Source: Adineta vaga
Lineage: Eukaryota > Animalia > Rotifera
Direction: 5' to 3'
Assembly (NCBI GenBank): GCA_021613535.1
Contig: CP075494.1
Span: 1,922,001-1,986,000, forward strand
DNA: 64,000 bases
The notes below the pieces were generated by a model. That model saw only the letters and a program-made list of their open reading frames with translations. It was not told the DNA's origin and did not search any database. A program made the position numbers and the translations under genes. This document shows positions 1 through 46,032 of this stretch, in pieces. Each line of letters begins with the position of its first letter. Position 1 is the stretch's first letter.

Positions 1-3000
1 ATTAGAAGAATCAGTCACATACATATTTCCATAACTATCAAAACTAAGCGACATTGGATTCGATAATTGGTCAGATGCTGAGCTATTTACTCCACTACAT
101 CCAACTATACATTGAAAACCATTAGGCCCTGATCTAACAATACGATGATTGCCACTATCGACAATGAATAAATAACTGTCGTTATCGAGAATAATATCAC
201 TTGGATATGAAAGTGTAATTGTTATGTTTGAAGATCCAGTTCCAGCAATTGTGATTCCATTTGAGTGTCCAAGATGGAAGAGTTGAATGCGATGATTTCT
301 ACGATCTGCTACATATAAGTCGAAGTTCGTATCAACAAAAATTCCATATGGATTGTCAAGACTCTTAGATGTGTTACCAGCAGTACCTGTACCAGCAACA
401 ATCGTCGTTGTACTAGAGTTATCACCTAACCATCTTTTGACAATACTATTCTGATTACGCATCGAGCAATACAATGTATTACTAATATCAATGAAAAGAC
501 CTGTACAAGTTTGATTAATATACATAACAGCAATACTAGTGTTTGTCGTTGTTGACCATCTAATCACTCGATGGTTTGTTCCTCCATCATCAATAAAAAT
601 GTCACCATTTCTTGTAACGAAAATAGCATATGAATTGTTTAAATTGCTAGAAATTGTTCGCGTTGAATTAATACTTTCATTGAACCATATCTGAATTCGA
701 TTACTTGATACATCACTAGCATAGATTGTGTTCTTAGTTGTGATAAAGAGACCGTACGGATTTGCTCCAATTGTATTGTTATCAGCAAAAGTGATTGCAT
801 TTGAATTCCATGATGCATTTGCACATAATTTTTGTTGATTGTATGATGGAACTAAATTGAAGAACATAGAATAGTATATTTATACAAAAATTACTTACCA
901 CTGACATTGTTTAATAAAAAGAATTTCTGAATTCGATTATTAAAGTAATCGGTGACAAATATATTTCCGTAGGTATCAAAGTGAAGAGAAGTTGGATCAT
1001 TCAATTGATTTGATGCTGAACCTTCAGATCCACTACATCCAACTATACAACGAAAACCATTAGGTCCTGATCCGACAATACGGTCATTTAGAGTATCCGC
1101 AATAAAAAGATACTTGTCCGCATCGAAAGTAATACCCACTGGACCATTGAGTGCGATTGTAACATTTATGGAAGTGTTGCCTGCAGCTGTAATTGCATCA
1201 AGGTGTCCGGATCGAAAAAGTTGAATGCGATGATTCCAGCGATCTGCTACATATAAATCAAGATTGATATCAACATAGACTGCCCACGGTTCATTAAGCA
1301 TATTTGATGAATGTCCACTACATCCAGTACCTGCAACGACTACCGTCGTATTTGAATTGCTATTCAATGATTTTGCAATAACTTGATGTTGATTCTGCAT
1401 TGCACAATAAATAGTATTATTAATGTCCACAAACAAATCAATACAAAAGCCGTTAACAAACATAACAGGAACGCTAGTATTTGTTGATAATGACCATTTA
1501 GTTACTCGAGCATTTGGCATTCCATTATTAATAAAAATATCACCATTTGCTGTAACGAAAATCGTGTGTAAGTTGGTGAAACCACCGAAAATTGTTTGTG
1601 TTGGATTAACACTATTATTCAGCCATATCTGAATTTGACCGTTTGATCGATTAGGAACATAGATTGTGTTGTCAGTTGCGATAAACATGCCGAGAGGATT
1701 TGTTCCAATTGTAGTACTAGTAGCAAATGTAATTGCATTAGCGCTCCATGTCGCATATGCATTCAATTTCGGTTGACTGTACGAAACCGCTAGACAAAGA
1801 AAATAAGTTATTTGAAAAAAACAGCCACTTCATATAGTTTAGAAAATAGCTAGATTTACCTGTCTGTGATGGAGGTATTGTGACGGCATTTGATTGAGTA
1901 GTTATTGTAGTTGATGTTAAAGTTGTATCTATGAAAAATTCAAAAAATGTGATTCTTTCCATCAGAAAACTTATTCTTCTAGTGTACACTTACCACATGA
2001 ATTTGTTAGTAAAAGAAATTTTTGAATGCGATGATTAGCAGTATCGGCAACATATATATTTCCATAGCTATCGAAACTTAATGACCGTGGATAGCTTAGT
2101 TGATTAGATGAATTTCCTCCACCACCACATCCAAATAAACATCGAAAACCATTAGGTCCTGATCCGACAATACGATTATTAAGATAATCCGCTATAAAGA
2201 GATAATTATCAGCATCAAGTGCTAATCCAACGGGCCGGTAAAGAGTAATTGTAATATTGATTGATGTACTTCCCGCAGCTGTACTAGCATTGGATTGTCC
2301 TGGTGAAAAAAGTTGAATACGATTATTGTTATGATCTGCCACGTATAGATTAAAGTTAGTATCAACAAAGATTCCATGTGGAGAATCTAGTCTATCCGAT
2401 GTGGTACCCGATATACCACCAATTCCAGCAACAATCATACCAGCACTGGAATTATCACTTAACCACTTTTTGAAAACACTGTGATGATTATGTCTTGAAC
2501 AGTATAATGAATTATTCATATCAACGAACAAACCAATACAGCGTCCGTTAACAGACATAACAGGAACGCTAATATTTGTTATCAATGACCATTTAAGCAC
2601 TTTACCACTTGTGATTCCATTATCAATAAAAATATCATCATTTATCGTCACAAAAATCATGCATGAATCACTAAAACCACCTGAAATTGTTTGTGTTGAA
2701 TTAACATTATTATTATACCATATTTGAATTCGATTGTTTGGCCGATCAAGAACATATATTGTATTATTAGTTGTGACTAAAATTGCATACGGCTCTGATC
2801 CAACTATGCTGCTATTGGCAACATTAATACCATTTTGGTCCCATGATACATTGGCACAAAATCTTGGTCGATTATACGTTATCCCTGAAATAAAAACAAT
2901 TAGTTCATACAAGGAAGAATGTTTATGGAATATAGAAATTCCAATAATTTCCCAGTTACTTACTAGCATTCTTTAATAAAGTAAATTTTTGTATTCGACT

Positions 3001-5212
3001 ATTACCCCAGTCAGAAACATAGATATTACCGTAACTATCAAAACTAAACCAACGAGGTAACGATAATTGATCAGATCCTGAACCTTGCCCATTAGTGCAT
3101 CCGACGATACATCGAAAACCATTGGATCCTGATCCAACAATACGATGATTGAAACAATCTGTGATAAATAAATAACTTTCACTATCTAGAATAATAGCAG
3201 TCGGATTTGATAGTGTAATTGTAACATTTGTTGATTTGAGTCCTGCAACGGTGGTACCATACGAGTCTCCAAAGTGAAAGAGTTGAATGCGATGATTGAG
3301 ACGGTCTGCGACATACAGATCATAGTTGATATCAACAAAGATTCCATGTGGATTTCTAAGACTGTTGGATGAGTTACTAGCAATACCTGTGCCGACTGCA
3401 ATCGTCACAGTACTAGAATTATCACCTAACCATCTTTTGACAACACGATGATAAGCACTCATCGAGCAGTACAGTGTGTCACTAAGATCAACGAATAAAC
3501 CATGACAAGTTCCATTAATATTCATAACAGGTATACTTTTGTTTGTTATTGGTGATGATCTAATCACTTGATGATTTGTTGTTCCGTCATCAATAAAAAT
3601 ATTACCATTTGCTGTAACGAAAATCGTGAATGGATCAATAAAACCAGTGGAAACTGTCTGTGTGAGATTAATACTTCCATGAAACCATACTTGAACTCGG
3701 TCATTTGATCGATCAGGAACATAGATTGTGTTGTTAGTTGTAATAAATAGACCATAAGGTTCGATTCCAATTGTATTACTATTAGCAAAAGTGATTCCAT
3801 CTGGATTCCATGTAGCATCTATATTCAATTTTGGTTGATTATATGATAAGACTGAAAAAGAAAAGTAATTAATTTAAGGAAAACAAAATGTTTGAAAAAC
3901 ACAGGGGTGGCAGCGGCCTATAGTTCAAAATCAGGATACAATGCATATACATACACCATAGGCGACAGTTTAAAGAGATTCTGAAAATAGATTTTCTTGA
4001 AATAGATGCTGTGAATTCGAATGGAACTTGTCCAGGACGATTCTTTCAACTTAGTTTCTTTCATAAAACCGAAAAATAGAATCGACAAATCTCACAAAAG
4101 ACAGACTAGAATCAACAGTAAATATATAAAAGTAAGGAATAAAATCAGGAAAGTAAACGCACTGCGAGACCTAAAAATATGTATATCTCAATAAGTTTTC
4201 AACTACGTACCAGTATTATTTAATGTAGCAAACTTCTGAATTCGATTATTATTACTATCGACTATATATATATTTCCATAGCTATCAAAACTAAGCGATG
4301 TAGGAGCTGATAATTGATTGGATTCGGGACCATTTGTACCAGTACATGCAATTATACATCGAAAACCATTTGGACTTGATCCAACAATACGATGATTGCC
4401 TTGATCTACAATGAAGAGATAACCATCATTATCAAGAACTATTGCAGTTGGAGATGACAATGAAATTGTAACGACTGAAGATTCATTTCCTGCAACTGTA
4501 ATTCCATTTGTTTGTGTAGGATGGAAGAGTTGAATTCGATTGTTGCTAGTATCTGCTATATATAAATCAAAATTGACATTAACAAACATTCCCGAAGGAT
4601 TATTCAGCATATATAAAGTATTTCCAGAAGATCCGGTGCCAGCGACAATGGTATATGTATTGGACATACTACTTAATGCTTTTCTGATCACTTGATGTTT
4701 AGTACTCATCGAACAGTAAAGATTATCATTTGTATCAATAAAAATATCATAACATTTTGCACATGTGTAAAGAACAGGAATACCATTCGTAGCATTCACT
4801 GTCCATTTACTAATCCTACCCATTAAATTATCACTATCCACATAGATTTCACCTTTTGTTGTAACGAAGAGACTATATGGAAAGGATATATTATTCGATA
4901 TATTTTTGATCGGTATTGTATTTCCTTCAGCCCATATAACAACACGATTATTAGCATAATTAGCTACGTAAATTGTGTTGTTTGTATTGATAAAAATATC
5001 GTATGGTTGCAATCCAACCGTAGTAATATTGGCAAATGTTGTAGCATATTGATGCCACGCAGCCTTAGAATGAAACTTTGGCCGATTATATGAAAGTGCT
5101 ATGAGAAACAGACAAGTATTCACTTAATAAACAATGAATGAGATGGCTTACTTCGTATTTGTTTGATGATTGTCACAATAATCCATAGTTTTAACCAATC
5201 AATGGATATCAT
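1..5212 (-). CDS. Secreted/surface multi-NHL beta-propeller protein (at least 5 propeller exons), 3' end outside window; paralog of the NHL-polycystin gene at 25748
   Basis: Signal-peptide exon 5212-5152 (MISIDWLKLWIIVTIIKQIR), NHL exons 5098-4211, 3851-2964, 2884-1994, Thr-rich linker exon 1928-1860, NHL exons 1789-899 and 851-<1; all phase-1 GT-AG junctions; NHL motifs such as P.GIFVD..LYVAD..NHRIQ and FDSYGNIYV.D..N.RIQKF. Confidence 0.9.
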
Positions 5213-5982: not shown

Positions 5983-6958
5983 TTAGACACGATTCATGTG
6001 TGGAAATATTTGATTAAACGTTCGTCTGCATTTCAATATTTTCTTGAATTCTTCTCGATAGATTTTACCTGTAAGAATATAAAGAAAAAATGAAACGAAA
6101 AAGGCGCCTTGTTGCCAAGCGATTGTTATATTTCGAATTGTTAAATAATAAGGTGTACCCATAGATGATATAAATGTACTTAAAATATAAATTATACTAG
6201 TTGGTGCGAAGAAAATAAAATATGCGACTACTTGAACAATTAACATTCGAGCTAATTGACCTTCTGTACGACGATGAGAACCTATTTGAATTTACTGTTC
6301 CTGCACGATACAGATGACTTCGAATATTATAAATTGTTAATGCACCGAAGATACTTAACATCATTGGAATTAAAAGAAATTGAAGAATAACTCGACTCAT
6401 CAGATAAATTGTTGTCAATGTTGTTGAATCATACAAAGTGCAACTTCTGTTATCAATATAACGTGAATCATAATCATAAATAACTAGAAATGGACTCATA
6501 TAGATTGAAGATAAAATCCATACGAAAATAATAATTCTTTTCGCAACAGACACTTGATTTAAATGGCGTAAACGAATTGATAGTGAACTTGAAAAAAATC
6601 GATCGATCGAAGCACATACTAACATTAATCCATACCATAATGGTGTTGAAAAAGCCAGAAATACAAAGACTTTACATGTAATCTGTGTATTATTCATATA
6701 AAAATCAAAACTATATTGAAGTATCCCATTCAGAGGTGAAACAATCGTAGATACTAAAACGGGTGGAATAGAAGCAAGAAAATAATAAGTACATGATGAT
6801 GATCGAAGAGGACGACGACTAAGTATACTAAGATTTAATAGATTTGTGATTATTACTAATGTTGTTGTAATGGAAAAACTGTAAACAAGAGTCTTCTTGA
6901 CTCTCTGAATAAAATTATACTCTGCAGACAGATTTAGTAATGATGTTGTATTATTCAT
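5983..6958 (-). pseudogene. Intronless class A (rhodopsin-like) orphan GPCR with a single frameshift near 6280 (pseudogene or sequence error)
   Basis: ORF 6197-6958 gives TM1-5 (CASIDRF motif); ORF 5983-6246 gives TM6-7 (FFLYILTGKIYREE); the frames join as ...SHRRTEGQLARMLIVQV after a 1-nt shift. Confidence 0.8.
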
Positions 6959-7429
6959 TGTATTACTTTGTCTAAAAAATAGTTCTCATGGTTTTCTAAT
7001 ATATTACAATGCACTAAATATCGTTGTATATAAAAAAAGCATAATTTTTACACGAACAAGTAAAATAAAGAAAAAGAATTTTTTGGAGTAGAAATAAATG
7101 GAATTATTTTTACAAAGACAAACCATTTTCTTTGAATAAGTTCTATTTAGATGATATTTTTTATCAGGAAATTAGCGAAAAACTGAAGAGAGAAAGAGAG
7201 AATAGAAGTGGATCACTTTAATTAATTGAGTTTTTTCAGTAACAGTTTTCATAAGTTTAGATTTATCAATGCATCAATCATTTCTTTTTCATTCATTCTT
7301 ATTTATTTATCCATTACATAAGGGAGAAAACAATTGAGCTTCATTTTAGATTCAAATTTTCATTTATTTATAGCATTCAGATAATACAAATCTCAAAAAT
7401 GCTTCCTATATAGTTGTATACGGAAAAAT

Positions 7430-8594: not shown

Positions 8595-8657
8595 ATCTTG
8601 AGGGTGTGGGTGTGGGTGTGGGTGAGTATATATTACTCATATCCACACTCACACCCT
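8595..8657. repeat. Telomere-repeat-armed hairpin element
   Basis: ATCTTGAGGG(TGTGGG)3TGAGT-ATATATT-ACTCATATCCACACTCACACCCT. Confidence 0.85.
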
Positions 8658-9145: not shown

Positions 9146-9227
9146 ATCTTGAGGTTGTCGGTAGGTGGAGGGTGGGTGTGGGTGTGGATATTTTTTATCA
9201 TTATTGACAGCCACACCACACCCACCC
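9146..9227. repeat. Telomere-repeat-armed hairpin element
   Basis: ATCTTGAGG...GGGTGTGGGTGTGG-spacer-CCACACCACACCCACCC. Confidence 0.75.
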
Positions 9228-9854: not shown

Positions 9855-12298
9855 CTACAAAAATAGTTGTTTGATAAGAATAACCAAATCACGATTAAAA
9901 ATGAATGCATAAGATATAATTGAAAAACAAAATATTGGTATAAAAGAAAGAATAAACAAGCGAATTGAAGAAGGTAATAGATAACATAACCAAGCAAGAA
10001 TTATTTTCCATGGTTGAATGAAAATTGATGTTAAAAGACATAAAATCATAGACCATAATATCAGACATAAACCAATATTAAAATATTGATTTAAAAATGT
10101 CATAATATGAAGATGTGACATTGAAATATAAATTGTATATATCGCAAAAAAGACTGCTGTTGAATATAATCCATATCGATTCCAAATTGAATTTTCTATT
10201 TGAGAAATATAATAATTTGTATAAAGATGAAAATATTGGAATTTTAATGGCCATTTTATATTTGAATACCATTGAAGAGGCTATATAAGATAGAAATTAT
10301 TTAATCATATGTATGAAAAAATATTTTACCTTTTGTTCAATCCACCAATGAGAATTCTCTAAGAGTGGTTCAAGTCGATATGTGAATTGATTTTGTTTCA
10401 ATCGTTTCGAATTTTCAATAATAGAATTGTGATCAAAATGATGAGGTAAGAAATAAAATGAAATATTTGATGTATTTATAAATATATCAATAGCATCAAC
10501 GATTGGTTGCATAGAAATGAAAAATAAATTATGTATTTGAAGATGTTTGACATAAGGAAAAGAATGAAATAAACTTTTTAATATAATATATGAATTTTCA
10601 TAATCAATATATACATTTAATATTTGAATTTGATTAATACATATATTATTCATTTGTATCATATCCTCAAATTTAATTTCCGTTTTAATAATTAATTCAA
10701 ATAATTTAGGAAATATAATTTTATATGGTTGAAATTTTAATAAGTCAATTATTGATAATAATGATATACATTCAATATGTTCAAATGTTAGAAATAAAGA
10801 AATTTCTTGAAAAGAAAATGAACAATTAAGATATAACTTTTTTATATGTGTAAAATAAGAATCTATTCGTTTTGATATTTTATCAATAGTCATTGAATTT
10901 ATATATTTAATGATCATTTTATCAACAAATTCATACGATTCTTCATCAATAATAATATTAATAGGATATAGATAAGATATTGTAAATACACAATCATCTT
11001 GATAATCTACATACCATTGTTTATTTTCTAACCAAAATGATGTTTGAAAAGAATCAATTAATACAGGATGATCTAAATTAAATTTAAAATTAAATGTAAG
11101 AAGTGAATTTGTTAAGGTTTGCCATCGGTATCCATCAATAAGATCATCATTTCCACTAAGAATCAATGTAAGATGTTTTAAGTAAGAGAAATTTGAAAGA
11201 AATTCTTCTATTTGATTCATTGATATTTCATAGTCTAAATTTGAATCTTCTGTATAAATCAGAAATGTCCATCGCGACAGTATTTTTTCCAAGAAAAGAA
11301 AATTACATAAATTTCGTAGAATTTCATTTGAAACAAGATGAACCTGCTCGATTATTGCCAATGTTCCTAACTGATTATAGTTATAAGAGTGAAATTCGAA
11401 AAAAAAGTTTTCATTATTATGACTATAATCAGTTAGGAACATTGGCAATAATCGAGCAGATTCATCTTGTTTCAAATGAAATTCTACGAAATTTATGTAA
11501 TTTTCACTTTTCTTGGAAAAAATACTGTCGCGATGGACATCTCTGGATAGAAATAAACTTACACGTTTTTGTAAGACAAAGTCGTGTTAATTTAGATGGA
11601 CCAAAATGAAAGTTCATATTATTTTCATTTTCTACTATTAAACATATATCAAGCGATTGGAGATATGGTGAATTATTCAGAATATTTTTCAATTCATTAA
11701 TAGAATATAATGTAATTTTTAAATAACGAAGTCTTGTCAATGAGAAATTTTCTGGTATGATAATATCGTCTACACATAAACGATGCAAATGTGGCAAAAT
11801 TTGTGCATAAGAATTGAAGATAATTGATTTCAATCGTTTTCTTTCATGAGAATAATGATTATATTCTATAGCAGAATATTTATGTGTACTATTTAATGAA
11901 AATGAATTTAATTGTGTTAATTCATGTAAATTAGTAAAAATATTTTCTAATGAATCGACTTCAATATTGATCAATGTCAAAGATTGTAAATGAAGAAATT
12001 GTTCAATTTGAAATCGAGTAAAGAATAATTCCGATTGACCTGGTGTATTTTCATCATCAGAAATTATTAATGAAATAACTTTTTCTGGTTGAATTTCATG
12101 ACAAATGAAATCAAAATCATTTCGTGATATTGATTTGAAATTCAATTTCCATAATGAATAAGAATTTAAAACATTATTAAGACGATCACTTACATTACGA
12201 AAAGTAAAGAGAATTTCTTGTGTGGAAAAATATTCAAATAGAATATGCAAGATTTCAATAGGTAAAAAATCCAACATACATCGATGTGACATAGTCAT
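9855..12298 (-). CDS. F-box/LRR-like protein with hydrophobic C-terminal segment
   Basis: N-terminal F-box LDFLPIEILHILFEYF; LxxLxL repeats; exons approx 12298-11563, 11246-10330, 10280-9855 (last exon in frame with hydrophobic ORF 9855-10121). Confidence 0.75.
11265..11540. mobile_element. Foldback/MITE-like palindrome in intron 1 of the F-box gene
   Basis: ~120-bp near-perfect inverted arms (ATGTCCATCGCGACAG...CTGATTATAG / CTATAATCAG...CTGTCGCGATGGACAT) around a ~40-bp spacer. Confidence 0.85.
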
Positions 12299-12990
12299 TG
12301 AATGATTGTTTTTTCATTTTCAAAAGTAAAAAATCAATAAAAAAAAACATTGACAGAACAAACAGACTTTTTTTCTGTTAATAATCAAATTTCGCAATTA
12401 AAATAAACAATCACATGTTCTACTACAATAATACACAAACTAGAATGCAAATTTTTCTTCTCTCTGGTGTGATTTTTTATCTTATTGAGTTCAATAATAA
12501 ACATTTTATTAAACAAGCCGTTGACATTATGCTGTCATGAACATCTCTGTCTATTCCCAGATGAAACAAAATTGTTAGCGGAATTGTTGTTGACAATGAT
12601 GATTTAGACGATAATTATTGAAAATGAAAACTTGTATTATTTCTTGCTTTTAAATCTATGTCATTGATTGAGAAGTTCTGCGGATCAATTAACGTGTACT
12701 ATATTATATTTGATACAGTTTCAACCAACAAGAGAAGCTTCTAAATCAGTACAATTCGATGAGAAATTCTTCTAATTACATCCATGTCTTTATTTATTCA
12801 CGATTAGAAAAATTAAGTTATAAAGAAAAGAATATATGCAGAAACAAAATTGACAATGAAGAATTGTAAAGTATTTATTTATAAAAGAGAGTAAATGATA
12901 TTTAATTCTTCAAGATTAAAAAATAGAGATCATTTTATTCCATCTGGTTTAACTAACGTGCGAGACGATGAAGATTAGTATCTTCTTCTA

Positions 12991-13264: not shown

Positions 13265-13309
13265 AAATGTGACGTTCAAGTGTACATTCTAATAGTTTTG
13301 TTAATTAGG

Positions 13310-14681: not shown

Positions 14682-15482
14682 TTAACACAAGTCCTGCAAT
14701 TCTAGGTTTTTATCACTAATTGTTTTCCATTTAGCAGTTTCAATATCTAATCGATAATGTGAGCCATTTTTCGAAGAGATCTCGATCACTTTTCGACCTT
14801 CAACTGTTTCTAATGTTGCACGATGGCTTTGCATACATCTAACCGGTCCATTTCCTGTAGTTTTCACCTCCTCTATACTGAAATCTGACAAATGGAGACG
14901 ATAGACATGAGTCTGTCGACGACGAGAAGAATTCATATATCCTAAACCACCAATAATATAGATGAACTCATTTCCATTCTTATCATTTTTCACATAAGTA
15001 GCTGTATGAAAATCTACTGGAGGAAATACATCTTCAGGATATCCATAAATTGTCACATCATTTGGATTTGTTGTTCCTAATATTTCTGGATTTGATCGAA
15101 CATCATTCTGTTCTCTGCCCAATGGAAAATTATTTGGTACAGGCATTGAATACATATCATATGATGGTACCATACGAGGATTTTGTATAACAATAACATC
15201 ATTATAAATTTGAAAGTCTTCATCGTAACAATCTTCATGTTCACCTCCGATACGAATCAATCGTCCATCTGGTAAATAAGTTTGCGTAGCTCCAAATCGA
15301 GTAAAGCACCATACTGGATGATCATTAGCACCATTATGATGACGATAATATTTATTTTCTTTTCGAATATGATATCCAATTAAATGTGGATTACAACACA
15401 TATATTTCGAAAAAGGTTTTTGCATCAATGTAGGATTATTTGTACCAAATTCAAAATGTTTATTTTGTTTAAAATCATCCAT
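14682..15482 (-). CDS. Intronless protein with a microbial-type kelch-like domain (HGT candidate)
   Basis: PVWCFTRFG..T.LPDGR.I.IGGEHED.YD.DF.IYNDV and YGYPEDVFPPVDFHTAT..IYIIGGLGY motifs, which I recognise from bacterial/fungal proteins (often fused to ankyrin repeats); first ATG at 15482 (MDDFKQ). Confidence 0.7.
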   Translation of the reverse strand: MDDFKQNKHFEFGTNNPTLMQKPFSKYMCCNPHLIGYHIRKENKYYRHHNGANDHPVWCFTRFGATQTYLPDGRLIRIGGEHEDCYDEDFQIYNDVIVIQNPRMVPSYDMYSMPVPNNFPLGREQNDVRSNPEILGTTNPNDVTIYGYPEDVFPPVDFHTATYVKNDKNGNEFIYIIGGLGYMNSSRRRQTHVYRLHLSDFSIEEVKTTGNGPVRCMQSHRATLETVEGRKVIEISSKNGSHYRLDIETAKWKTISDKNLELQDLC

Positions 15483-15675
15483 AATTATTTTTGTCCTCAA
15501 GTTGTAAAATGACTTTAATAAATGCAATTTATTATGAATTTATAGTAAAAAAGAGTTATCTCCTTTCCCAGAATGTGATAAAAAATACCTTTTTTTCCGG
15601 TGTTGAAATTATACACATGACACCATATTTTATCGTATGAGATGTAAGTTAAAAGTTTTCGATTCTTTCTCGAGA

Positions 15676-20180: not shown

Positions 20181-20209
20181 TTATATAGATAGATAGATAG
20201 ATATAGATT

Positions 20210-20793: not shown

Positions 20794-21033
20794 TGACAGG
20801 TTCTTTCTTAATTTCTACATCTGGTGCAAATAATGTGACATTCAAACGTATTAGTAAGTTATCTATAACAAAATAAATCGAGTAATTTAATAAAAGAAAC
20901 ATTTCATATAGATAATTTAACAGTGATTGAATCAATATATTCATCAATATTGAATGAAAATAGTCGAACATATTCTCGAGAATGTGGAAAATCGAATTAT
21001 TATTATGAAACAATTGAAATTTCCGTATCAAAA

Positions 21034-34700: not shown

Positions 34701-37678
34701 TTGAAATATTTAATCATTCGTGATTTACAAACAATGGAAAAATATTATTTTACTTGTCAACGATGGTTTGCCGTAGAAAAAGATGATGGAAAAATTGAAC
34801 GTATTTTACCTGTTGCAGGCGAATTAGAGAAACGTCAATTTTCATTTGTATTAACTAAACGAACTTATCATAGTATTTCAGATGGTCATCTTTGGTTTTC
34901 AATCTTTTCTCGACCACCATCACAACAATTTACACGTGTTCAACGATGTACATGTTGTTTTGTTCTTTTATTTGTTTCAATGTTTTTGAACATCATGTAT
35001 TATGATTTATCAAATGAAACAAAATCAAACAATTCAGCCAATTTATCCTTTGGTTCACTTTACATTTCTCCTCAACAAGTATGTAAAACTGATTTGTTTT
35101 TTCCTATTGTTTTTTATTTCTATTCCAAGATAATTATTGGTATTATTGTGGAATTATTTGCACTAATTCCAAGTTTGTTACTTATTCAATTATTTCGTCG
35201 TCTTCGTCCTCATCGAAAACATCAATCACCTATTCGACAAGCTCTCTGTAAAGTCAAACCAAATATAGAAAATCATGTCGATCAACAGAAATCATCATTA
35301 ACTTTTCCGTGGTGGTGTATTTTTATTGCATATGGATTATGTTTTGTCTTTGTTGCTCTTTCAATTCTATTTATTATTGCTCGTGGTATTGAATTTGGTG
35401 ATGCAAAAACTCAAAAATGGTTAGCATCTATCTTGAGTAGCTTCTTTTCTTCGATTCTTCTTACTCAACCATTAAAAGTAATGTTCTAAGATTTTCAAAT
35501 CTAAAGACACTTATGTACATATCTCTATTTCAAGATTGTGTCATTGGCAATAATATTTGCATGTTTTTGTCGAGAATCAAATGATGATAAAGAAGCCAAT
35601 GAACTGTTGGATGATAATGATATTGGTTTAGAAGTTGATGAAGAATATCTTCATACAATTAAGGTTTATTTCTTAGATGTTTTATAATTTCATAGAGAAT
35701 AAATATTTTCTAGAATGAATCTTTAATTCCTTATCGATCTCCAAATCGTGCTAATCGTTTAAATGCAACTGAAGTGATTCATCTTCGTCAACAACGTTTG
35801 AAACAAATTCAAATGTGGTCAATTATTCACGAAATATTACTTTATTTCTGTTTTCTCTCATTTCTTTATGTAATCATTTATTCAAATCGTGATTCCAATG
35901 CTTTTTTCAAAGTTAATCATCTTAGAAAATATTTTCTTAATTCAAAACAAATTGATTTTGATTATACAAAAGTTTGTTTCTGTTTAAAAAGCGAATTCTT
36001 TAAACTAAATAAATATTATTTAGATTTCAACAATTAATCAATATTGGAATTGGTTAGAGAATCATTTTATCTTCAATCTTCGTGCACAACAATGGTATAA
36101 TGGTGAATCACCTCGAAATCTAAGCGGTTTTATGGATGATAAAACTAATCGATTGATTGGTTGGGCAACAATGAGACAATTACGAGTTCGAACTAGTTTA
36201 TGTCATCAACAAACTTTCATTTCTTCTACATGTCAACATGATTATAGTTATTCAAATGAAGATAAAAATTCTTATGAACCCGGATGGATAAATACAACAT
36301 CAACTAATTATAATATATTTATTCAAAATGCATTTAAATATCAATCTAATAATACAAATTATAGAAGTGGTGGTTATATTTATGAATTTCGTGGTCGTCT
36401 TTCTGATCTTCGAAGTAATCTTTCACAACTTCATTCATTAAGTTGGATTGATAATCAAACTCGAGCTATTATTGTTCAATTAACTCTATATAATCCAAAT
36501 GTTCAATTATTTACTGCAGTTACTTTTCTTGCTGAATTTCTTTCATCAAGTGGAGTTTTTACTTCTGCTCGTTTCGAACCCATTAGTTTCTATGGTAATT
36601 TTCATATGAAAAAAAAACTTCTTATTCTTTCTTTTGTTTTTTAGCATTTACATCAATTTATCAATTAGTTTGTACGATTATTTATATGTTAATGATCTTC
36701 TATTTCATGTGGATTGAATTACGATCATTATTTGAATTAAAATGGAAATATTTTATTCAATTTTGGTCGTTTATTCAACTTGGTATTATTATTTGTTCAT
36801 GGACAAGTCTTGGAATTTATATTTGGCGTTATCAAGAATATCAACGAATTGGAAAATTATTCTCTGAAACGAATGGATATGTTTATATTGATTTACAATT
36901 AATTTCCTATATTAATGATCTATTAACTTATTTATTGAGTTTTTGTTGTTTTTTTGGTACAATTCAATTAATTAAATTATGTCGTTTTAATCAACGTTTT
37001 TGTTTATTTATTTATACACTTCAATTATCAGCAAAAGAATTATTATCATTTTCATTTATGTTCTCTATTGTATTTATGTCATTTATATGTCTTTTCTATT
37101 TCTTATTTATTTCCAAATTACCTGAATGTTCAAGTTTATTTGGAACAGCACAAATGTTATTTGAAATGACCTTAATGAAATTTGATGCACATCAATTAAG
37201 TAATTCAGCAGCATTTCTTGGTCCATTTTGTTTTAGTTTATTTATTCTATTTGTTGTATTTATTTGTATGAGTATGTTTTTATCAATTATTGGGGATAAT
37301 TTTCGTCGTTCAAGAGACAATTTCAATGATAAAAGGAATGAAATATTTTCATTTATGTTTCAAACATTTCAACAATGGACAGGTAATAAATATAGAGAAG
37401 AATTGAATTTAATATTAAAATAACAAATGTTTAGGTTGGAAAATAGTAACAGAAGAGAAAATTCAAGTTGAAAGAGATGAGCAAACGCATGAAGAATATT
37501 ATGATTGGATTGAACAATTTCCAGAGAAAATGGATCAATTATTAAATGCATTGGATCAGGTATACTTAGTTTTCTAATATTTGATTATAGATTTGCTTTG
37601 TCTTTTTTTTTGTATTATAAATAGATCTATATGGATCAAAAGACGGAAAAATCAATTGTGCAAGAAACGAAATTTTAA
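25748..37678 (+). CDS. Polycystin-1-like (PKD1L/REJ family) receptor-channel with four N-terminal NHL beta-propellers
   Basis: Signal exon 25748-25811; NHL exons 25912-26799, 26946-27839, 28179-29072, 29225-30118; Thr-rich linkers; REJ region from 30501; GPS motif C..W.SDG..C..HL|T (34172-34180); PLAT (YQIIVFTG..AGT.S, IRIWHDNSG..SW.L); further TM segments and polycystin channel domain; stop at 37678. Confidence 0.9.
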
Positions 37679-37839: not shown

Positions 37840-40800
37840 CTATACTCTAAAAACGCACCGATACCCTCGTTGTATATTTCGTCGATATTGAATAATTGTT
37901 TTATGAAATGCTTTTTTATAAAACTTCGATGGTATTACAAATATAAGAAAAGTAAGCATTGCTGGAATAAATGAAATAAAATATCCGCAAAGAAATAACC
38001 ATGAATCATTAATTGATTCCATACATTTTGATATATAAGAAATAATTAAACGTGGTAATGCAAGTATAACTAAAAGAACAGGTGCAAGAAATAAATGTTT
38101 ATGTTCTTGATAATTTTCACGTAAAATTCCTTTAAAACTTCGTTTTATTTGAATATTTGATTGTTGTCGAGATTTTTTTGTTACAAGAATAAGAGCTGAA
38201 ACGAAATTAATAATAAATGGAGCAAAAAAATGAAATGTATGTATAAATGAATTATATGTTTGTAAATTAGATGATGAATAAGTTACAGTACACCAAATTC
38301 GTTTTTCATTTTCATCTTCATCAATTTCATCAATTAAATGTCGATGAATTGGTTCATGAATAAATGTTAAAATATTAAAAAATAAAATAAAACTAATAAT
38401 TATTTTCGCTATTTTTCTACTTTTTCTTTTACTAAAACGAACACTTTTAATAATCGTTATTGCTCGTTCACAAGCAACACATGCATTTAACCATTGATCC
38501 ATATGAAGAAAAACACGAAGAAAATAATCCAATGTAATACATTGAATTTGTAAAAATAATCGATTTGATATTTGAGATATTTGAACAAAAATTAAAATCC
38601 AAAATTTTAATGCAAATAATATAACAATAATTAATATTGTTATTGATGAACTTAATAAATATAAACCACAACCAACTTGACGTAAAGATTTATTTTTAAA
38701 TGTAATTAAAGTTAATAGACCATTAATTAAACCTATTAAAGTAAAAATAATATTTAATATAATACTTATTTGTATAATATTTGATTGTTTTATTAAATTA
38801 ATTGTTGGTTGAATATGATAACCTAAAATATTATCAAGTGATAAACTAAATCCACTTGTACTAAATTGACAACGTCGACCATAGAAACATGAATGACAAA
38901 GACATGTTGATTTTGTTAAACATTCTGATCCAAGTTGAAAACATTGACCGCCATTTGTACATTCATTTTCATCTGAACAATTCACTTTTGTTGTATGATT
39001 AAATAAAAAACAATTTGTTAAATATTGACCATTGTTATGTTTATAACATAAACATAAATAAACATTATCATAGAAACATAATAATGTCGAATTTTGACAT
39101 GGTAATTGATAATATTTAATACGATGAAGAAAATGATATTGAACAATTGTTGGATTAAATAATTCATTTAAATGTAAACAACGATCGGTTAATTTAACTT
39201 GTTTATTTAATTTAACTTTATCAAATGAAAGTTTTTGTGAAATTATAAAATAATAATTTTTTTTAAAATCTTCAATTAAAATAAGATTAATTGAAATAGA
39301 CCAATGAATATTTATTAAATCTTTCATTGAAGATATTGTTTTAAATGTTGTTATTCGATTTGATATAAACGTTTTTTCCGTTTTAATAAAATGAATAAAT
39401 ATTGTTTGTAAGAAATGAAATTTTTTCTCAAACGATAAATTAATTTCATTATTTTCATATTGACAATGATCACCATTATAACCTTTTGAACAAATACATG
39501 TATATGATAATTGTCGATTTAAATCAGTTGGAATACATTCACCATGATTATTACATATTTCAGTATTATTTGATTGACATTGAATATCTTTAAGAAAACA
39601 TCGACGACCAAATTTATATAAAGGACACATACATATTGATCGATTTTGAGCATCAATACCAAGAGATTTGGAATCGGATGAACATTTATAATTGAATGAA
39701 TATGAAATTGAACAATACTGTCCAGACCATTGAGGATAACATTGACAAAATGTTTTATCATTATTGGAATATTTTATACATTTTCCATGAATACATTGAT
39801 TTTTTGAACATTTTTTACCATTAAAATCAATTGGTGGAATCTGAATTGTTAAATTTAAACGATGAACAGGTAAAAAATTATTTAATATTGGAAAATATAA
39901 ACTTCCACGATAATTTGAAGATTTCTTTTCATAAATATCAATATGAATTGAATAAATTTTGTTTTGATCTTTTAATCGTGTTGAATAAAGTAAATAATAA
40001 TAGAATTTTATTTTACAATCTCTTACAAATAAATAAGTAAATTTTACATAGGAATGAATAATTCTTTCATTTGTATTATCAATAAGTTGAATAAGAATTT
40101 CAAATGGTGTTTGTCGTGAATCTGAATATGAATGAATTTGAAAAGATAAACTTACTCGTTCATTTTGATATTCACATGTTTTACCATAATAACTATCTGG
40201 ACAAAAACATATGTACGTGGATTCATCATGATTCAACCAAATATGTATAGGATAACCACGATGACATTCAATTTTATTTTCAAATCTTTTTCCAATCATC
40301 TTTGTATTCAATTTCTCCTAGAATATATATATATAAACTCAGATCGGTGTGTGTGACGTTAGTTCTTCCTATATCTTAACTCACACTCTTTTGATCGAAT
40401 AAAGAAGGATTATTACCTGTTTACATAAATGTGTTTGAATACTTTGTTGAACTGAAGTAGATATAATATTATTTGAAAGAAAATTTAATTCCGGACGAAT
40501 ATTTTTCATAGAAGAATTATTCCAATTTTCACATAAATTTGTAATATTAATACAATGATTTTCTTTACATACTATTGGTTCATCGCTACCATCGAGACAA
40601 TCAATTTGACGATCATTTATTTTCTTAATCGATAAACATATCATTTGTTTGGTATGAATTGAAATACATGTATATTCATCATAAGAACAAGAATTTAATA
40701 ATAATGATTTTGTACAACCAAGTTCATCATCACCATTAAAACAATTCCAAAATCCATTACAATATGTATGTATATTATTACATGACCAAGAATCACATTC

Positions 40801-42225
40801 AGTTTCATCCGTTTCATTTTGTCCATTAATTAATCTTGGTAATAAATTAATATTTCTATCACAGATCATTTCAAATGGAATACGATGTTTTTTTGCTTGA
40901 CTATCATTATTACATAAATAATACATAAATTCACCATCATGTAGAAATCGATTATTCATATTTAATATTTGATTATCATTAGAACAATGAATTATAGGAT
41001 AATCATTATGAGATATGTAATTAATAGATTTCATATAAGATTTAAATTTATTATATATCAATTGTAAATAATCCAAATCAAAGAAACGAATTGAAGTCGA
41101 AGGAAATTTTGAAATAAAAATACGATAACATTTTCTATGATTAAAAAATACCATTTGATTATCAATAAAATATTTATCATAAAGTGAATTATTATAACAA
41201 ATATAAGGATCTTGAAAATTTGTAGAATTGAAATTAATTGAATCACTTTTTTCATAAGCAAAATAAATATTACCAAATAGAATTGGAATAATTGGTATAT
41301 TGAACATTGGTGGACATTCATCATTAATAATTTCAAGACATTCAGATCTTTCACAAAAATGATTACAAATTGAACGAAATTTATCGGGTATTGGAAGAAT
41401 ACATTTAAATGCTGACCAACAATCATCCGATACATATTCATCATTAATAGAAAATAGTTCTTCAAATAATTTCTCTTGACGTCCTAAAATACAAGAACTT
41501 GTTAAAGGTAAATCACGACATTTTGCATCTTCAATTAAAACACTTGGTAAAATTGATTTAACAGTATCATATTCTGACATAAGTTCATAGATTGGATCAT
41601 TGATTTCAATTTGTGAACAATATTCTTCATCAAATGAACCATCAAGACAATCAATTTTTCCATCACAAATTTCACTCCAATCTAAACAAGATGAACCACG
41701 ATAACATTGTAATGAAATATAACATGTTAAACTATGTAAAAAAGGTTTTGTATTTTGATAAAATGATTTCATAGAATTTATAATATCAATCATAGATTCT
41801 ATATCTTTCATTTCATATTGACACATTGAACCAAATCTTTCCTTTGTACAATTATAAAAGATTTCTTTTCCTTCTGATGATGGCAATAATTCATCTAGAT
41901 ATGATTGATAACGTTCAATAATATCAATGGGTGCAAACCAAGAATATAAATCATCACTTGTTATATTTCTTTTTGAAAGTTCAATAAAACTATAATTTGA
42001 ATTATAACCATTTGGTTGAATATGGAATTCGAATGATTGTTCATTAAGACAATAGGAAATTAATTCAAATGTTGAGATAGATGATATTTCTTCAACTATA
42101 GGAAGATTAAAACAATGATATTGTAATGTATTTATTTCATTTGTATTATATAAATATAAATCAGATAAAGCATTGATTGAATGCAAAAGAATCACATAAA
42201 ATAAATATGTTGAACAATAAAACAT
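37840..42225 (-). CDS. LDLa- and EGF-repeat-containing rhodopsin-like GPCR
   Basis: Signal peptide, LDLa motifs (CDGKIDCLDGSFDE, CFNGDDE, DCLDGSDE), EGF repeats, 7TM with VACERA; one phase-0 intron 40416-40318. Confidence 0.88.
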
Positions 42226-42628
42226 TCTGTTTTCAATAATAAAAATGAATAAAAATCATTATTTTAACATCAAGTTTAGATGAAAAATAGAAAATGCATA
42301 TTATTATTTGTTCCTATTTAAACGTTAGTAATGCATTTTCTAGATAAAAAATATCATACGCAATAAATTAACATATGTTCGAATGACGTTATGATAAAGC
42401 TATTCCGAGGTTCAGTGAGAAAAGAATATTTGAGTAACATTTGTTTTTTGTATATTGTGAAGAAAAAGAGAAAGAGATGAAAAACATTTGAACATATGTA
42501 GATTTAAATGAAACCATGTTTTTAATACCTACTTCCTTTTCTCCTTTCACTCAAATATATTCAGTTAATAGTTTAGTTTTCAAAACTCTTTGAAAAAGAA
42601 GAATCTAATAAAATTAATTTTAGAAATA

Positions 42629-45600
42629 ATGATTTTAATTGAGAACATCAAATTATATTTCATTTTATCAATTATTGGTCAATTATCAGGTCTTTCATTC
42701 AATCAACCAAAATTTTGCTCTGAAGCAATTTGGAATCAGAATGGTACTACTTTTATTGGAAAAAATATACTTAATTCATCAGCATCTTATGTATTTATTA
42801 CAGCCTATAATTCAATTTATGTTCTAAGTCAAGAACCATCTTTCATTTTTATCTGGTTAAACCATTCTATTTATCCAACTATGACGATATCAGACAACTT
42901 GAAAAGGCCACAATCAATTTTTGTTCAGAATGAGAATGAAATCTATATTGATAAAGGTGATTTCAATCGTAAAATCGAAAAATGGATATTAAATACAAAT
43001 ATTAGTATTCCTGTTATGGATGTTCCATCATCATGTTTTGGTTTGTTTATTGATATTAATAACAATCTATACTGTTCATTGAATGCTCATAATCAAATAG
43101 TCAAAACTTGGCTAGGTGATAATTTGTTAACGCCAGTTGTCGTAGCTGGAAATGGATCTCGTGGTTCGACATCGGATACTTTCAATGGTCCATGTGGAAT
43201 TTATGTTGATAGTAATTTTAATCTATATGTAGCTGATTCTGATAATGCTCGTATTCAATTATTTCGACGAGGACAATTATATGGAATTACAGTTGCAGGA
43301 AGTAAATCAATAAATATTACTGTTACTCTTAAACAGCCGACTGGAATCATTCTTGATCACGACGGTTATTTATATATTGTTGATCGTAGTGGTAGGCGCA
43401 TTATTCGAGGAGGAGCAAATGGTTATCGATGTATACTTGGATGTCTTGTTGCTAATACAGATTTAAACGGAATACTGTCAACAGATTATTTAGCTTTTGA
43501 TAGTTATGGAAATATTTATGTTAGTGATACAATTAATGGTCGAATTCAAAAATTTGCTTATCTCAAAAAATCATGTGGTAAGTGTCAAAGCATGAGAAAT
43601 GATCATTTACCAATATTTTGTATTTTTAGATCGAATTACTGCAAATATTTCTTCAAACACAACATTACGAAGTATGTAAAGTTTGTGTAGAACCATCTTG
43701 AGGGTGTGGGTGTGGGCGAAGAAGATATACCCATATCAACACCCTCAAGATCATGGTGTATATCTTGTGCTCATCGTTTGCACCAACTCAATTTTATTTC
43801 TTTTAGATCTTTCATTCAATCAACCAAAATTTTGTCCAACGGCAGCATGGACCTCATTTGGAGTTACTTTTTCAGAAATAAATCAATCACCATCTTATAT
43901 ATTTATTACAGCTAATAATTCAGTTTACCTTCTGAGTGAAGCATCATCGCTCCTTTACATTTGGTTGAATCAGTCTGCTAAACCAACAATAAGAATATCA
44001 GACAACTTGAGAAGCCCACAATCAATTTTTGTTCAGAATGAGAATGAAATCTATATTGATAAAGGTGATTTTAATCGTAAAATCGAAAAATGGATATTAA
44101 ATACAAATATTAGTATTCCTGTTATGGATGTTCCATCCTCATGTTATGGTCTTTTCATTGATATTAATAACAATTTATATTGTTCATTGAATGCTCATAA
44201 TCAAATAGTCAAAACTTGGCTAGGTGATAATTTGTTAACGCCAGTTGTCGTAGCTGGAAGTGGATCTCGTGGTTCGACATCGGATACTTTCAATGGTCCA
44301 TGTGGAATTTATGTTGATAGTAATTTTAATCTATATGTAGCTGATTCTGTTAATGCTCGTATTCAATTATTTCGACGAGGACAATTATATGGAATTACAG
44401 TTGCTGGAAGTAAATCAATAAATTTTACAACTATTCTCGAACATCCAATGGGTATTATTCTCGATCAGGATGGCTATTTATATATTTCTGATCAAGGTGA
44501 TTATCATACTCGTATTGTTCGAGGAGGACCAAATGGTTATCGATGTATAATTGGATGTCTCGATATTGGTCCAGATTCTAACAAATTAGGTGGACCAGGT
44601 CTAATGGCTTTTGATAGTTATGGAAACATTTACGTTACTGATACGAGTTATGTGAGGATTCAAAAATTTATTTTTTCAAAAGCTTCATGTGATCGTAAGT
44701 GTTAAATCATGAGAAATGAACAATATACTAATACATTGTATTTTAAGATCAAATTACTACAAATATTTCTTCAGTTACAATATCACGAAGTATGTATAGT
44801 TTTTATATAATTATCTTCCAAAATATTTTACGGATGAACGAACAGGTTCGATGACTAGGTAGTGACCGTTTATATTCTCGATTTGCTCGTATTCATTACA
44901 CATCGATAAGATAGATATGTGTATGCAACAACCTTGAGAAACGTTTTTTTAGATCTTTCATACAATCAACCAAAATTCTGTCCAGCCGCAACTTGGAATT
45001 CCTATGGAATTACTTTTGCCGACAAAAATATTCTTAATGGAACTCCATATTTTATGTTTATAACAACCAATAATTCCATCTATGTTGTTAATCCATCAGT
45101 ATCTCGAATTTACATTTGGTTAAACGATTCTATAACACCAACTACAACAATATCAGACAACTTATCATCTCCCAGATCAGTTTTTGTACAAAATGAGAAT
45201 GAAATCTATATTGATAAAGGTAACCGTAATTATCTAGTGGTAAAATGGATATTAAATAAAAATATTAGTGTTCCTATTATGAATACTTATGGATCATGTT
45301 ATGGTCTTTTCATTGATATTAATAAAAATTTATACTGCTCAATATACAAACATCATATGGTTGTGAAAAATTGGTTAGATGATGATGATACAAGATTGAT
45401 TACTGTAGCTGGAAATGGATCTCAAGGTTCGACTTTGGACGCATTGAATTCTCCATGTGGAATTTTTGTTGATATTAATTTGAATTTATATGTAGCTGAT
45501 TCTTTAAACCATCGTATTCAAATGTTTTCACGAGGACATTTGCATGGCATAACAATTGCTGGAAGTACATCAGTTAATACTACTATAGGTCTTAATCATC

Positions 45601-46032
45601 CAAGTGGAATTGCTTTCGACGGCGATGATTATTTATATATCGTTGATAGTTATAATAATCGTATTGTTCGAGGAAAATCAAATAACTTTCGTTGTATACT
45701 TGGATGTGTTTCTCCTGGTTCAGAATTGCACAAATTCAAGAGACCAAGTCATATGACTTTTGATAGTTATGGAAATATTTATGTTGTTGATACAGACAAT
45801 TATCGAATACAAAAATTTACTTATTTAAAAAAATCATGTGGTATGTAGGGTAGAACTGTAAAAGTAGAAAAAATTTACATGATAATCTTTAAAATAAGAG
45901 TTTGTATTTAGTTTTTATTCTCTTTAAGAATCCTTCATCATGACAACAACTACACCTGTATTATCACGTTCAACGAAGATTCTAGTTGGATATTCAACGC
46001 TGTGTTTAATGCTTTTCATACTTTATATGTAA
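42629..46032 (+). CDS. Triple-NHL beta-propeller surface protein, probably GPI-anchored
   Basis: Signal peptide MILIENIKLYFILSIIGQLSG; exons 42629-43577, 43630-43671, 43807-44694, 44748-44789, 44953-45840, 45929-46032; ends ...SRSTKILVGYSTLCLMLFILYM* (hydrophobic tail, no cytoplasmic domain). Confidence 0.85.
43695..43751. repeat. Telomere-repeat-armed hairpin element (intronic)
   Basis: ATCTTGAGGGTGTGGGTGTGGG-CGAAGAAGATATA-CCCATATCAACACCCTCAAGAT. Confidence 0.85.

Follow-up and report, generated by a model that had tools for sequence, protein, structure and literature searches.

The question raised by this locus of Adineta vaga is whether the NHL beta-propeller exons recurring along 46 kb are one movable module, joined to different partners to give a repertoire of surface receptors, as the first-pass annotation proposed. 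The window, meaning the whole stretch of 64,000 nucleotides that was analysed (contig CP075494.1, positions 1,922,001 to 1,986,000), was searched by tblastn with one unit as query; all searches were run with single exons as queries. Twelve full-length NHL units and one fragment were found in the window:

5093-4230, 3846-2983, 2879-2016, 1784-921 and 846-1, minus strand: NHL matches of gene a, the last clipped by the window edge
18044-18265, plus strand: NHL fragment of locus b
25917-26777, 26951-27817, 28184-29050 and 29230-30096, plus strand: NHL matches of gene c
42695-43555, 43812-44669 and 44958-45818, plus strand: NHL matches of gene d

All 12 complete units matched Pfam NHL (PF01436), with E of about 1e-7 to 1e-28. 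At least 13 units had been counted before in these 46 kb; 12 are complete, and the thirteenth is a 75-codon remnant.

Boundaries and fold of the propeller exon

In every unit, the acceptor AG lay exactly 5 nt upstream of the S/T codon of S[YF]N[QR]P[KR], and the donor GT lay 19-25 nt downstream of the F codon of QKF. The exons were 888, 891 or 894 nt long only, with both acceptor and donor in phase 1. Base-level examination of 35 units in A. vaga showed phase-1 boundaries at 35/35 acceptors and 34/34 donors, which bears out the earlier statement that a complete internal propeller is one exon of 888-894 nt with phase 1 on both sides. The start motif given there held broadly, but TYNRPR, SYSQPK and SYNQQK were also found, and the propeller was flanked by introns on both sides except in gene d, where unit 1 follows the signal peptide without an intron. 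Units of Adineta steineri and Rotaria sp. had boundaries identical to those of A. vaga; the boundaries have not moved between two bdelloid families. This uniformity reflects descent from one ancestral exon and not 70 independent events.

The neighbouring ectodomain junctions that were checked, those of the signal-peptide, ~130-aa module, first REJ and tail exons, were all phase 1, and paralogues carry 1-5 units, in agreement with the symmetric phase-1 module described before. The common phase of all junctions allows units to be added, removed or relocated with the frame kept. Class 1-1 mobile modules of Patthy-type exon shuffling include the EGF, Ig, FN3 and kringle exons of animal extracellular proteins. 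The NHL unit resembles them in that domain and exon coincide, between two phase-1 introns, and in its occurrence behind a signal peptide, in tandem copies and in unrelated contexts. It differs in being a complete six-bladed propeller of ~296 residues, several-fold larger than the classic modules, and in an expansion (135 confirmed exons, 952 candidates) so far seen in bdelloid rotifers only. The YWTD propellers of LDL-receptor relatives are spread across several exons.

An AlphaFold model of the NHL unit (pLDDT 92.7, pTM 0.92) contained 24 strands in six groups of four. Foldseek with this model gave TM 0.7-0.9 to the NHL domains of Pizza6, TRIM2, Thin and PknD, and a PDB profile search with the unit gave TRIM71 (E 5e-53). 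The six-bladed fold is thus like that of the NHL domains of TRIM71, TRIM2/3, Brat, Thin and M. tuberculosis PknD, with E of 1e-26 to 1e-53 and TM of 0.7-0.85. TRIM-NHL proteins act in the cytoplasm, as RNA-binding proteins or E3 ligases, and have a RING/B-box/coiled-coil front. The rotifer propellers, by contrast, are tandem units behind a signal peptide, with many sequons and a cysteine pair at the termini. There were ~8 N-x-S/T sequons per unit, and the N-terminal and C-terminal cysteines were either both there or both missing (p 1e-6). Together with the signal-like first exons, these features hint at an extracellular location. Extracellular NHL propellers have precedents in the teneurins and in the NHL sensor of PknD.

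Genes and remnants in the window

Gene c, with four propellers, was resolved as follows:

25748-25811, plus strand: exon 1, ATG and signal-like peptide, phase-1 end
25912-26799, plus strand: NHL unit 1, 888-nt phase 1-1 exon
26946-27839, plus strand: NHL unit 2, 894-nt phase 1-1 exon
28179-29072, plus strand: NHL unit 3, 894-nt phase 1-1 exon
29225-30118, plus strand: NHL unit 4, 894-nt phase 1-1 exon
30227-30295, plus strand: possible Thr-rich stalk exon, 69 nt, phase 1-1, by inference
30501-37423, plus strand: body with REJ exons, GPS-containing exon, PLAT, polycystin domain and PKD channel

The first REJ acceptor lies at 30501, in phase 1. In open exons, gene c has REJ followed by GPS, and then PLAT, the polycystin domain and channel helices, as in Polycystin-1-like and PKDREJ proteins. 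The matches were strong for REJ (E 5e-14 and 3e-10), PLAT (7e-14), Polycystin_dom (1e-32) and PKD_channel (3e-31), and marginal for GPS (22.7 bits vs a cut-off of 22.5). Gene c looks intact. The order of its domains is the canonical one of Polycystin-1, PKDREJ and the sea-urchin REJ receptor, in which, as presumably here, the ectodomain ahead of REJ is the variable, ligand-facing part. Known ectodomain modules of the polycystin-1 family include leucine-rich repeats, C-type lectin, PKD repeats and CUB, whereas the ectodomain of gene c and its like consists of 1-5 NHL propellers. Literature searches returned no paper describing an NHL-polycystin fusion. By position, unit 1 of gene c corresponds to the first units of gene a, C5:808k and C3:658k. 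Units 4 and 2 showed 95% protein identity. The stalk region was 95-97% identical to the C5:806k paralogue, and unit 4 could alternatively splice in phase straight to the REJ exon.

Gene d carries three propellers and a short tail:

42629-43577, plus strand: exon 1, signal-like peptide and NHL unit 1 with no intron between them, phase-1 donor
43807-44694, plus strand: NHL unit 2, 888-nt phase 1-1 exon
44953-45840, plus strand: NHL unit 3, 888-nt phase 1-1 exon
45929-46032, plus strand: last exon, phase-1 acceptor, 34-residue tail, stop at 46030-46032

The tail has a short Thr run and then a 17-residue hydrophobic C-terminus, with small residues ahead of the hydrophobic stretch and no cytoplasmic residues behind it. 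With the N-terminal signal-like peptide, this gives a GPI-like pattern on inspection of the sequence, and gene d, too, looks intact.

Gene a contains five propellers:

5152-5212, minus strand: exon 1, ATG and a 20-codon hydrophobic signal-like peptide, phase-1 end before GTAAGC
4211-5098, minus strand: NHL unit 1, 888-nt phase 1-1 exon
2964-3851, minus strand: NHL unit 2, 888-nt phase 1-1 exon
1994-2884, minus strand: NHL unit 3, 891-nt phase 1-1 exon, start TYNRPR
899-1789, minus strand: NHL unit 4, 891-nt phase 1-1 exon, start SYSQPK
1-851, minus strand: NHL unit 5, clipped by the window edge; 891 nt and phase 1-1 in locus L014

Its units were mutually 35-67% identical. It had been read as an architecture of its own; this was dropped when REJ and GPS exons were recognised immediately to the left of the window. 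An in-frame deletion removes about 136 residues of PLAT, and translation would stop 23 residues into the polycystin domain with no channel exons after it, so that gene a lacks the PLAT, polycystin domain and channel set of a Polycystin-1-like receptor-channel. Gene a is a second polycystin-1-like gene, a truncated paralogue of gene c, and telomere-like remnants lie near its broken end. A GPCR ORF at 6200-6985 was considered as a piece of gene a and rejected: it ends at a stop ~780 nt upstream of the gene a ATG and so belongs to a gene of its own.

Locus b, at 18-21 kb, consists of the following pieces:

18044-18287, plus strand: NHL remnant, the last ~1.5 blades, with its phase-1 GTAAGT donor kept
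18356-19194, plus strand: two complete module exons of ~130 aa with Cys (18356-18742 and 18811-19194), each phase 1-1
19261-20853, plus strand: third module exon, interrupted at about 19496-20790 by a dispersed repeat of ~1.3 kb
20912-21070, plus strand: fourth module exon, broken off at 21036 by a telomere-like GGGT/GGGTGT patch

An in-frame TAG is present at 18173-18175 within the NHL remnant. The ~1.3-kb repeat had 85 matching pieces, 73-97% identical, among 40 scored of 179 genome candidates. Because of the in-frame stop, the transposon and the truncation, an intact NHL-plus-module gene was ruled out; locus b is a pseudogene, the wreck of a propeller-plus-module gene. The ~130-aa module matched no Pfam family, and an Atlas search gave a PPC or galactose-binding-like match, which is a lead only.

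The four architectures claimed for the window were thus not upheld: the gene with five propellers is a polycystin-type paralogue, now truncated, of the one with four, and the locus at 18-21 kb is a wreck. The NHL family is represented in the window by two members that look intact, a truncated copy and a wreck. Since gene a and locus b, half of these four loci, are damaged, part of the family is decaying.

Partners, copy number and the variable face

Whole-genome searches gave 952 candidate NHL exons in the 101-Mb genome, of which the best 135 form the census. The census favours the polycystin-type subfamily because these 135 exons are those most like one polycystin-type unit. Among the best 135 of 952 exons there were 85 arrays: 31/85 were followed by REJ exons, with 1-5 units each, 18/85 by the ~130-aa module, itself a phase 1-1 exon, and 36/85 had other or unknown partners. 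EGF partners were confirmed at two loci. In this small, biased sample the partner types were REJ, the ~130-aa module, EGF and a short tail, and the earlier claim that the exon is joined to several unrelated partners stands at the genome-wide level. UbiA, GMC oxidoreductase, arrestin and TauD ORFs upstream of NHL arrays elsewhere are neighbouring genes and were not accepted as partners. There were ~50 REJ loci in the genome, and the architecture of gene c is kept at ~30 other loci and in A. steineri, where an NHL+REJ protein is present.

Gene c was collinear at 92.6% with the two-unit paralogue C5:805-810k, save for two extra units in gene c. A two-exon block repeat, 89% identical, ended within exons, and blades 4-6 were homogenised within gene c. 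Changes in copy number are mostly tandem duplication by unequal recombination with breakpoints inside exons. In the tree, one clade grouped the first units of four polycystin-type genes, and a second clade grouped units 2-4 of gene c. The 35-unit tree had 4 partner-label changes vs ~7.8 in shuffles, and EGF-type units did not form one clade (AU p 0.002, in a small, biased sample with the partner groups named after a first tree was seen). The phylogeny of the module and its partners thus disagree, as in class 1-1 modules, and partner switches are rare, about four on the 35-unit tree. The module is mobile on an evolutionary scale only, and propellers mostly keep their partner type, which narrows the mobility first proposed.

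These results could also reflect an ordinary lineage-specific tandem expansion of one phase 1-1 exon, with partner changes as by-products, a variable face due to relaxed constraint in redundant copies, and no organised recognition repertoire. The duplications needed no particular intron phases because their breakpoints lie inside exons, and the strongly clustered partner labels, the decay of gene a and locus b and the many expanded repeat families of bdelloids (PMC3846280) are in line with such an expansion; however, at least four unrelated partner types recur, and the exon boundaries are the same in two bdelloid families.

Propeller faces were assigned by strand order in the predicted secondary structure. 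Hypervariable columns were located in the A-B and C-D loops (19/24) vs 2 in the B-C and D-A loops (p 0.0015). The dN/dS was 0.4-1.4 in the variable-face loops and 0.12-0.43 in the strands (0.15-0.43 in those of gene c and gene d units); strand positions are under purifying selection. Between units c2 and c4, the variable-face loops had 11 non-synonymous and 0 synonymous changes. An immune-type receptor repertoire would be expected to show excess non-synonymous variation on its binding surface; variation here is concentrated on one face, but dN/dS there is not clearly above 1. We take the variable face to be the putative ligand-binding face; this A-B/C-D side may or may not correspond to the 'top' with which TRIM-NHL domains bind RNA. 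Taken as a class, the loops of the variable face had dN/dS close to 1, which is also expected under relaxed constraint.

A mere tandem expansion would accommodate this ratio, but not as readily the sharp polarisation of variation to one face, the purifying selection at strands or the open reading frames of all 12 complete window units and nearly all 135 scored genome-wide units. We consider it rather unlikely.

Combinatorial use at the RNA level, with exon skipping or mutually exclusive propeller exons giving several receptor isoforms per gene, would be permitted by the 1-1 exons, any subset of which could be skipped in frame, and by the in-phase splice from the last unit of gene c to the REJ exon. 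Reads for gene c at 25700-31500 (5,801 letters), however, gave only DNA contigs spanning the introns, and the runs guessed to be RNA were without gene c. The donors of all NHL units were strong and alike (GTAAGT) and the acceptors pyrimidine-rich, with no hint of regulated choice. Many units that share a gene are old and have diverged, those of gene a among them, in line with constitutive multi-propeller ectodomains. This use is very unlikely. Least credible of all is that most loci in the window are relics without function, in a region rich in repeats and prone to breaks, with genes c and d as young, not-yet-decayed duplicates: telomere-like patches and a transposon do mark the broken ends of locus b, telomere-like remnants lie by the end of gene a, and introns of gene c and its paralogue are conserved at least as well as exons (94-97% vs 92-93%), but gene c retains all polycystin-1-like channel domains in open exons, its strands and those of gene d are constrained, and the same architecture recurs across the genome and in A. 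steineri.

A putative repertoire of surface binding heads

Taken as a whole, the best explanation, which we regard as fairly probable, is a family of phase-1 NHL exons built into strings of phase-1 parts that would serve as a germline surface-binding repertoire. In bdelloids, a six-bladed NHL propeller, very probably extracellular, is encoded in a single exon between phase-1 introns. A signal-peptide exon is followed by 1-5 propeller exons, sometimes by ~130-aa beta-sandwich-like modules or a Thr-rich stalk, and by an anchoring or signalling part, which in the window is the polycystin-1-like REJ-GPS-PLAT-channel body (gene c, truncated gene a) or the GPI-like tail (gene d). Copy number changes chiefly through unequal in-register recombination and through gene conversion between adjacent units, and transfer to a new partner is rare. 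The face of A-B/C-D loops, carrying nearly all hypervariable positions, would bind ligands, and the family would form a germline-encoded repertoire of surface binding heads. The data show directly the anatomy of the exon and its persistence across bdelloid families, the counts of partners, the recent duplications and the polarisation of variation to one face; we infer the extracellular location, the ligand binding and the signalling via the polycystin-like body. The family probably comprises surface sensors; an immune role is speculation.

Germline-diversified recognition families of invertebrates include snail FREPs, sea-urchin 185/333 and amphioxus VCBPs. The NHL family is like them in being large and lineage-specific, with a conserved scaffold, loop variation on one surface, gene conversion and unequal recombination. 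It differs in its NHL scaffold and in its signalling partners. PMC3846280 names NHL among the expanded families of A. vaga. Literature searches on NHL with bdelloid, rotifer, Adineta or polycystin gave this one passing mention and no description; the NHL cassette family is large and almost undescribed.

If the explanation is true, the family is a clean, large-scale case in which exons were shuffled and duplicated in tandem, the module, a whole propeller per exon, being unusually large. It would also be a candidate surface recognition family for bdelloids, which are asexual and face fungal pathogens and repeated drying. Tentatively, it is possible that the bdelloid germline encodes a large repertoire of NHL heads with hypervariable positions, linked by one phase-1 joint to varied signalling bodies (~30 polycystin-type), as a new pattern-recognition or environmental-sensing system whose specificity would be set by propeller number and loop variation. 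The polycystin-1 body carries a swappable putative ligand-binding head in ~30 paralogues, and the old question of the ligands of polycystin-1-type ectodomains could become testable in a small animal.

Exon anatomy and genome-wide distribution of the NHL unit

The window covers positions 1,922,001-1,986,000 of contig 5, a chromosome-scale member of the 100.8-Mb, six-contig assembly; G+C is about 30%, and the best outside protein matches were from A. steineri, A. ricciae and Rotaria. Stop-free frames and tblastn with one unit identified 12 full-length NHL units in the first 46 kb of the window, and every complete unit in the window matched Pfam NHL. The first-pass annotation had counted at least 13, of which the thirteenth is only a fragment.

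In the NHL exons, the acceptor AG was located exactly 5 nt 5' of the S/T codon that begins the motif, leaving two bases of an interrupted codon at the exon start. The GT donor was located 19, 22 or 25 nt 3' of the F codon of QKF, leaving a single base of an interrupted codon at the exon end, and the introns on both sides are therefore phase 1. The exons measured 888, 891 or 894 nt. Across all units in 30 loci from a whole-genome search, every acceptor (35 of 35) and every donor (34 of 34) obeyed the same boundary rule, which bears out the claim that each complete internal propeller is a single exon of 888-894 nt between phase-1 introns. AG at -5 and phase-1 donors were likewise present in A. 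steineri and Rotaria sp. Silwood2 (one contig each), indicating that these boundaries predate the split of the Adineta and Rotaria lineages. The first-pass observation was confirmed, and its interpretation was partly supported.

With one propeller unit as the query, 952 candidate places were found in the genome. The best 135 of the 952 were scored, all with E <1e-69 (weakest 3.5e-70), and almost all were open frames. The first REJ exon found about 50 loci, and a second exon family, encoding a module of about 130 aa, at least 202 candidates. Cross-matching of coordinates grouped the 135 NHL units into 85 arrays, a sample biased to units resembling the polycystin-type query and with array sizes that are lower bounds.

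Table. NHL arrays grouped by same-strand 3' partner, with the number of arrays, of units and of units per array (minimum sizes).
REJ exon: 31 arrays; 62 units; 1-5 per array
About 130-aa module: 18 arrays; 30 units; 1-3 per array
Neither REJ nor module: 36 arrays; 43 units; 1-3 per array

The last class included gene d of the window and two loci with a Thr-rich stalk plus EGF repeats. NHL and REJ were also combined in one A. steineri protein. Two NHL-plus-module arrays lying 45 kb apart, C5:497999-504056 and C5:543011-549044, matched unit by unit in their E-values, with no difference at all for the modules and the last unit, and on this ground they are probably a recent segmental duplication.

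The four loci of the window

Gene a: ATG at 5212, last NHL exon crossing the window edge, minus strand; signal-like exon and five NHL exons
Locus b: 18044-21070, plus strand; NHL remnant and module exons
Gene c: 25748-37423, plus strand; four NHL exons and a polycystin-1-like body
Gene d: 42629-46032, plus strand; three NHL units and a short tail

Exon 1 of gene c (64 nt) was signal-like and ended in phase 1. It was followed by the four NHL exons and by a REJ exon with a phase-1 acceptor; a 69-nt Thr-rich 1-1 stalk exon (30227-30295) perhaps lies between NHL and REJ. The domain order 3' of REJ was GPS, PLAT, polycystin domain and PKD channel. The fourfold NHL array on a polycystin channel was upheld, and gene c looks like an intact polycystin-1-like receptor-channel. 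The public sequencing runs containing gene c were DNA only, because their contigs span the introns, and gene c was absent from the public runs guessed to be RNA.

The fivefold array of gene a had been described as an architecture of its own. Its first exon was signal-like (61 nt), and REJ and GPS exons, 61-77% identical to their gene c counterparts, were found to the left of the window. Gene a is a second polycystin-type gene in inverted orientation and no separate architecture. It carried an in-frame deletion of about 136 residues of PLAT and a cytoplasmic loop; its frame covered just 23 residues of the polycystin domain before a stop, exons for the channel were absent 3' of this stop, and telomere-like G-rich remnants were located just past the broken end. 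Gene a is damaged.

Locus b, also listed as an architecture, is a wrecked gene. What survived of its NHL exon was the final stretch of 75 codons, with an in-frame TAG and a retained phase-1 donor. Two complete module exons followed (18356-19194), the third was interrupted at about 19496-20790 by a 1.3-kb dispersed repeat, and the fourth was truncated at a telomere-like patch at 21036. The repeat was non-coding, contained internal direct repeats of about 60 nt, and had 85 matching pieces genome-wide (40 of 179 candidates scored) that were 73-97% identical, several of them full length. The module itself contained Cys, occupied its own phase 1-1 exon of about 384-387 nt, and often stood in tandem directly 3' of NHL exons as a second large exon family. 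No Pfam family was found for it; an Atlas search pointed faintly to a beta-sandwich of PPC-like or galactose-binding-like type, which serves just as a lead.

In gene d, no intron separated the signal-like peptide from the first propeller, and two further NHL exons of 888 nt followed. The last exon, joined in phase 1, encoded a tail of 34 residues in which a short run of Thr precedes a 17-residue hydrophobic C-terminus. The three units on a tail proposed in the first pass were recovered. In its pattern the tail resembles a GPI signal. On contigs 1 and 3, a single open frame of about 500 codons contained both the final NHL unit and the opening REJ exon (C1:15255287-15256735 and C3:16442642-16444054), which suggests that the intron between them was lost; gene d has in the same way lost the one separating its signal peptide from propeller 1.

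Short telomere-like G-rich patches (GGGTGT / GGGTATGG) were observed at 21036-21070, 46118-46175, 8603-8625 and 9175-9191 of the window, and at about 6690-6775 of genome locus L031; there were 5 matches against 0.02 expected. The patches at 21036 and 46118 were each followed by their own reverse complement, forming small palindromes. The patches were located where locus b breaks off, about 90 nt past the gene d stop, and just past the break in gene a. Expanded receptor-type genes also crowded the neighbourhood (37843-42255, 6200-6985, 15812-17479, 14685-15539 and 11507-12313, all minus strand). The neighbours were an 825-codon ORF with EGF plus class-A 7TM and, adjoining it, an ORF weakly matching LDLa. 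They were joined by a further class-A GPCR, a gene for an amiloride-sensitive sodium channel (ASC), and ORFs of Kelch and F-box/LRR type.

Copy-number change and partner switching

Gene c was collinear at 92.6% with a two-unit paralogue (C5:805-810k) over two stretches, one spanning the promoter and unit 1, the other unit 4 and the REJ exons; units 2 and 3 account for the difference. Within gene c, 26239-27845 repeated as 28514-30124 at 89%, a two-exon block with ends inside exons, and the 3' halves were homogenised across all four units. In a tree of 35 NHL units, one clade united the first units of four genes (gene a, gene c, C5:808k and a four-unit gene on contig 3); units 2-4 of gene c and unit 2 of the paralogue formed another, and the three units of gene d were mutual closest relatives. 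Collinearity, block repeat, homogenisation and tree together indicate that in-register unequal recombination and gene conversion account for most copy-number change, a process that is independent of the intron phases. In the comparison of gene c with its closest paralogue (window 25586-31587 against C5:805278-810371), introns were 94-97% identical, at least matching the NHL and REJ exons (92-93%).

The 35-unit tree required four changes of partner label, compared with about 7.8 in shuffles. A single clade was rejected for the three EGF-type units (AU p 0.002) and for the REJ-type units (p 0.011), p-values that are indicative since the partner groups were named once a first tree was to hand. 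Partner switching was rarer than copy-number change. The notion of a mobile module holds in that several partner types exist, but the switches among them were few.

Propeller fold and variation on one face

The AlphaFold model built from the 35-unit alignment had a mean pLDDT of 92.7, and its 24 strands fell into six sets of four. Its Foldseek neighbours were Pizza6, TRIM2, Thin and the extracellular PknD sensor (TM 0.7-0.9), and a PDB-sequence profile search returned TRIM71 (E 5e-53). The unit is a canonical six-bladed NHL propeller. About 8 N-x-S/T sequons were present per unit. Cysteines at alignment reference positions 9 and 297 (9 residues in and at the very end) were both present in 20 units, both absent in 12 and mixed in 3 (p 1e-6); in first units of polycystin-type genes both were usually absent. 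This co-occurrence suggests a ring-closing disulphide between the unit ends, and such a putative N-to-C bond fits an extracellular domain.

Loops of a four-stranded meander alternate between two faces, A-B and C-D on one and B-C and D-A on the other. With strands A-D and loops assigned from the strand order of the model, 19 of the 24 columns with entropy >=2.8 bits were located in A-B/C-D loops and 2 at the start of strand B, while the B-C/D-A loops held only 2 (Fisher p 0.0015). Among close pairs, dN/dS (Nei-Gojobori) was 0.4-1.4 in A-B/C-D loops and 0.12-0.43 in strands. Between units 2 and 4 of gene c, these loops carried 11 non-synonymous and 0 synonymous changes, compared with 4 and 8 elsewhere (p 0.0013). 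The expected excess of variation at one surface was thus observed, although the loops as a class were near a dN/dS of 1, a value that relaxed constraint would produce as well.

Symmetric 1-1 modules in extracellular proteins are a classical principle. NHL is among the expanded repeat families of A. vaga, for which defence or signalling roles have been guessed (PMC3846280). A literature search for a single-exon NHL cassette or NHL-polycystin genes found no description of either; the size of the NHL module, the scale of its expansion and its partnership with polycystin are new.
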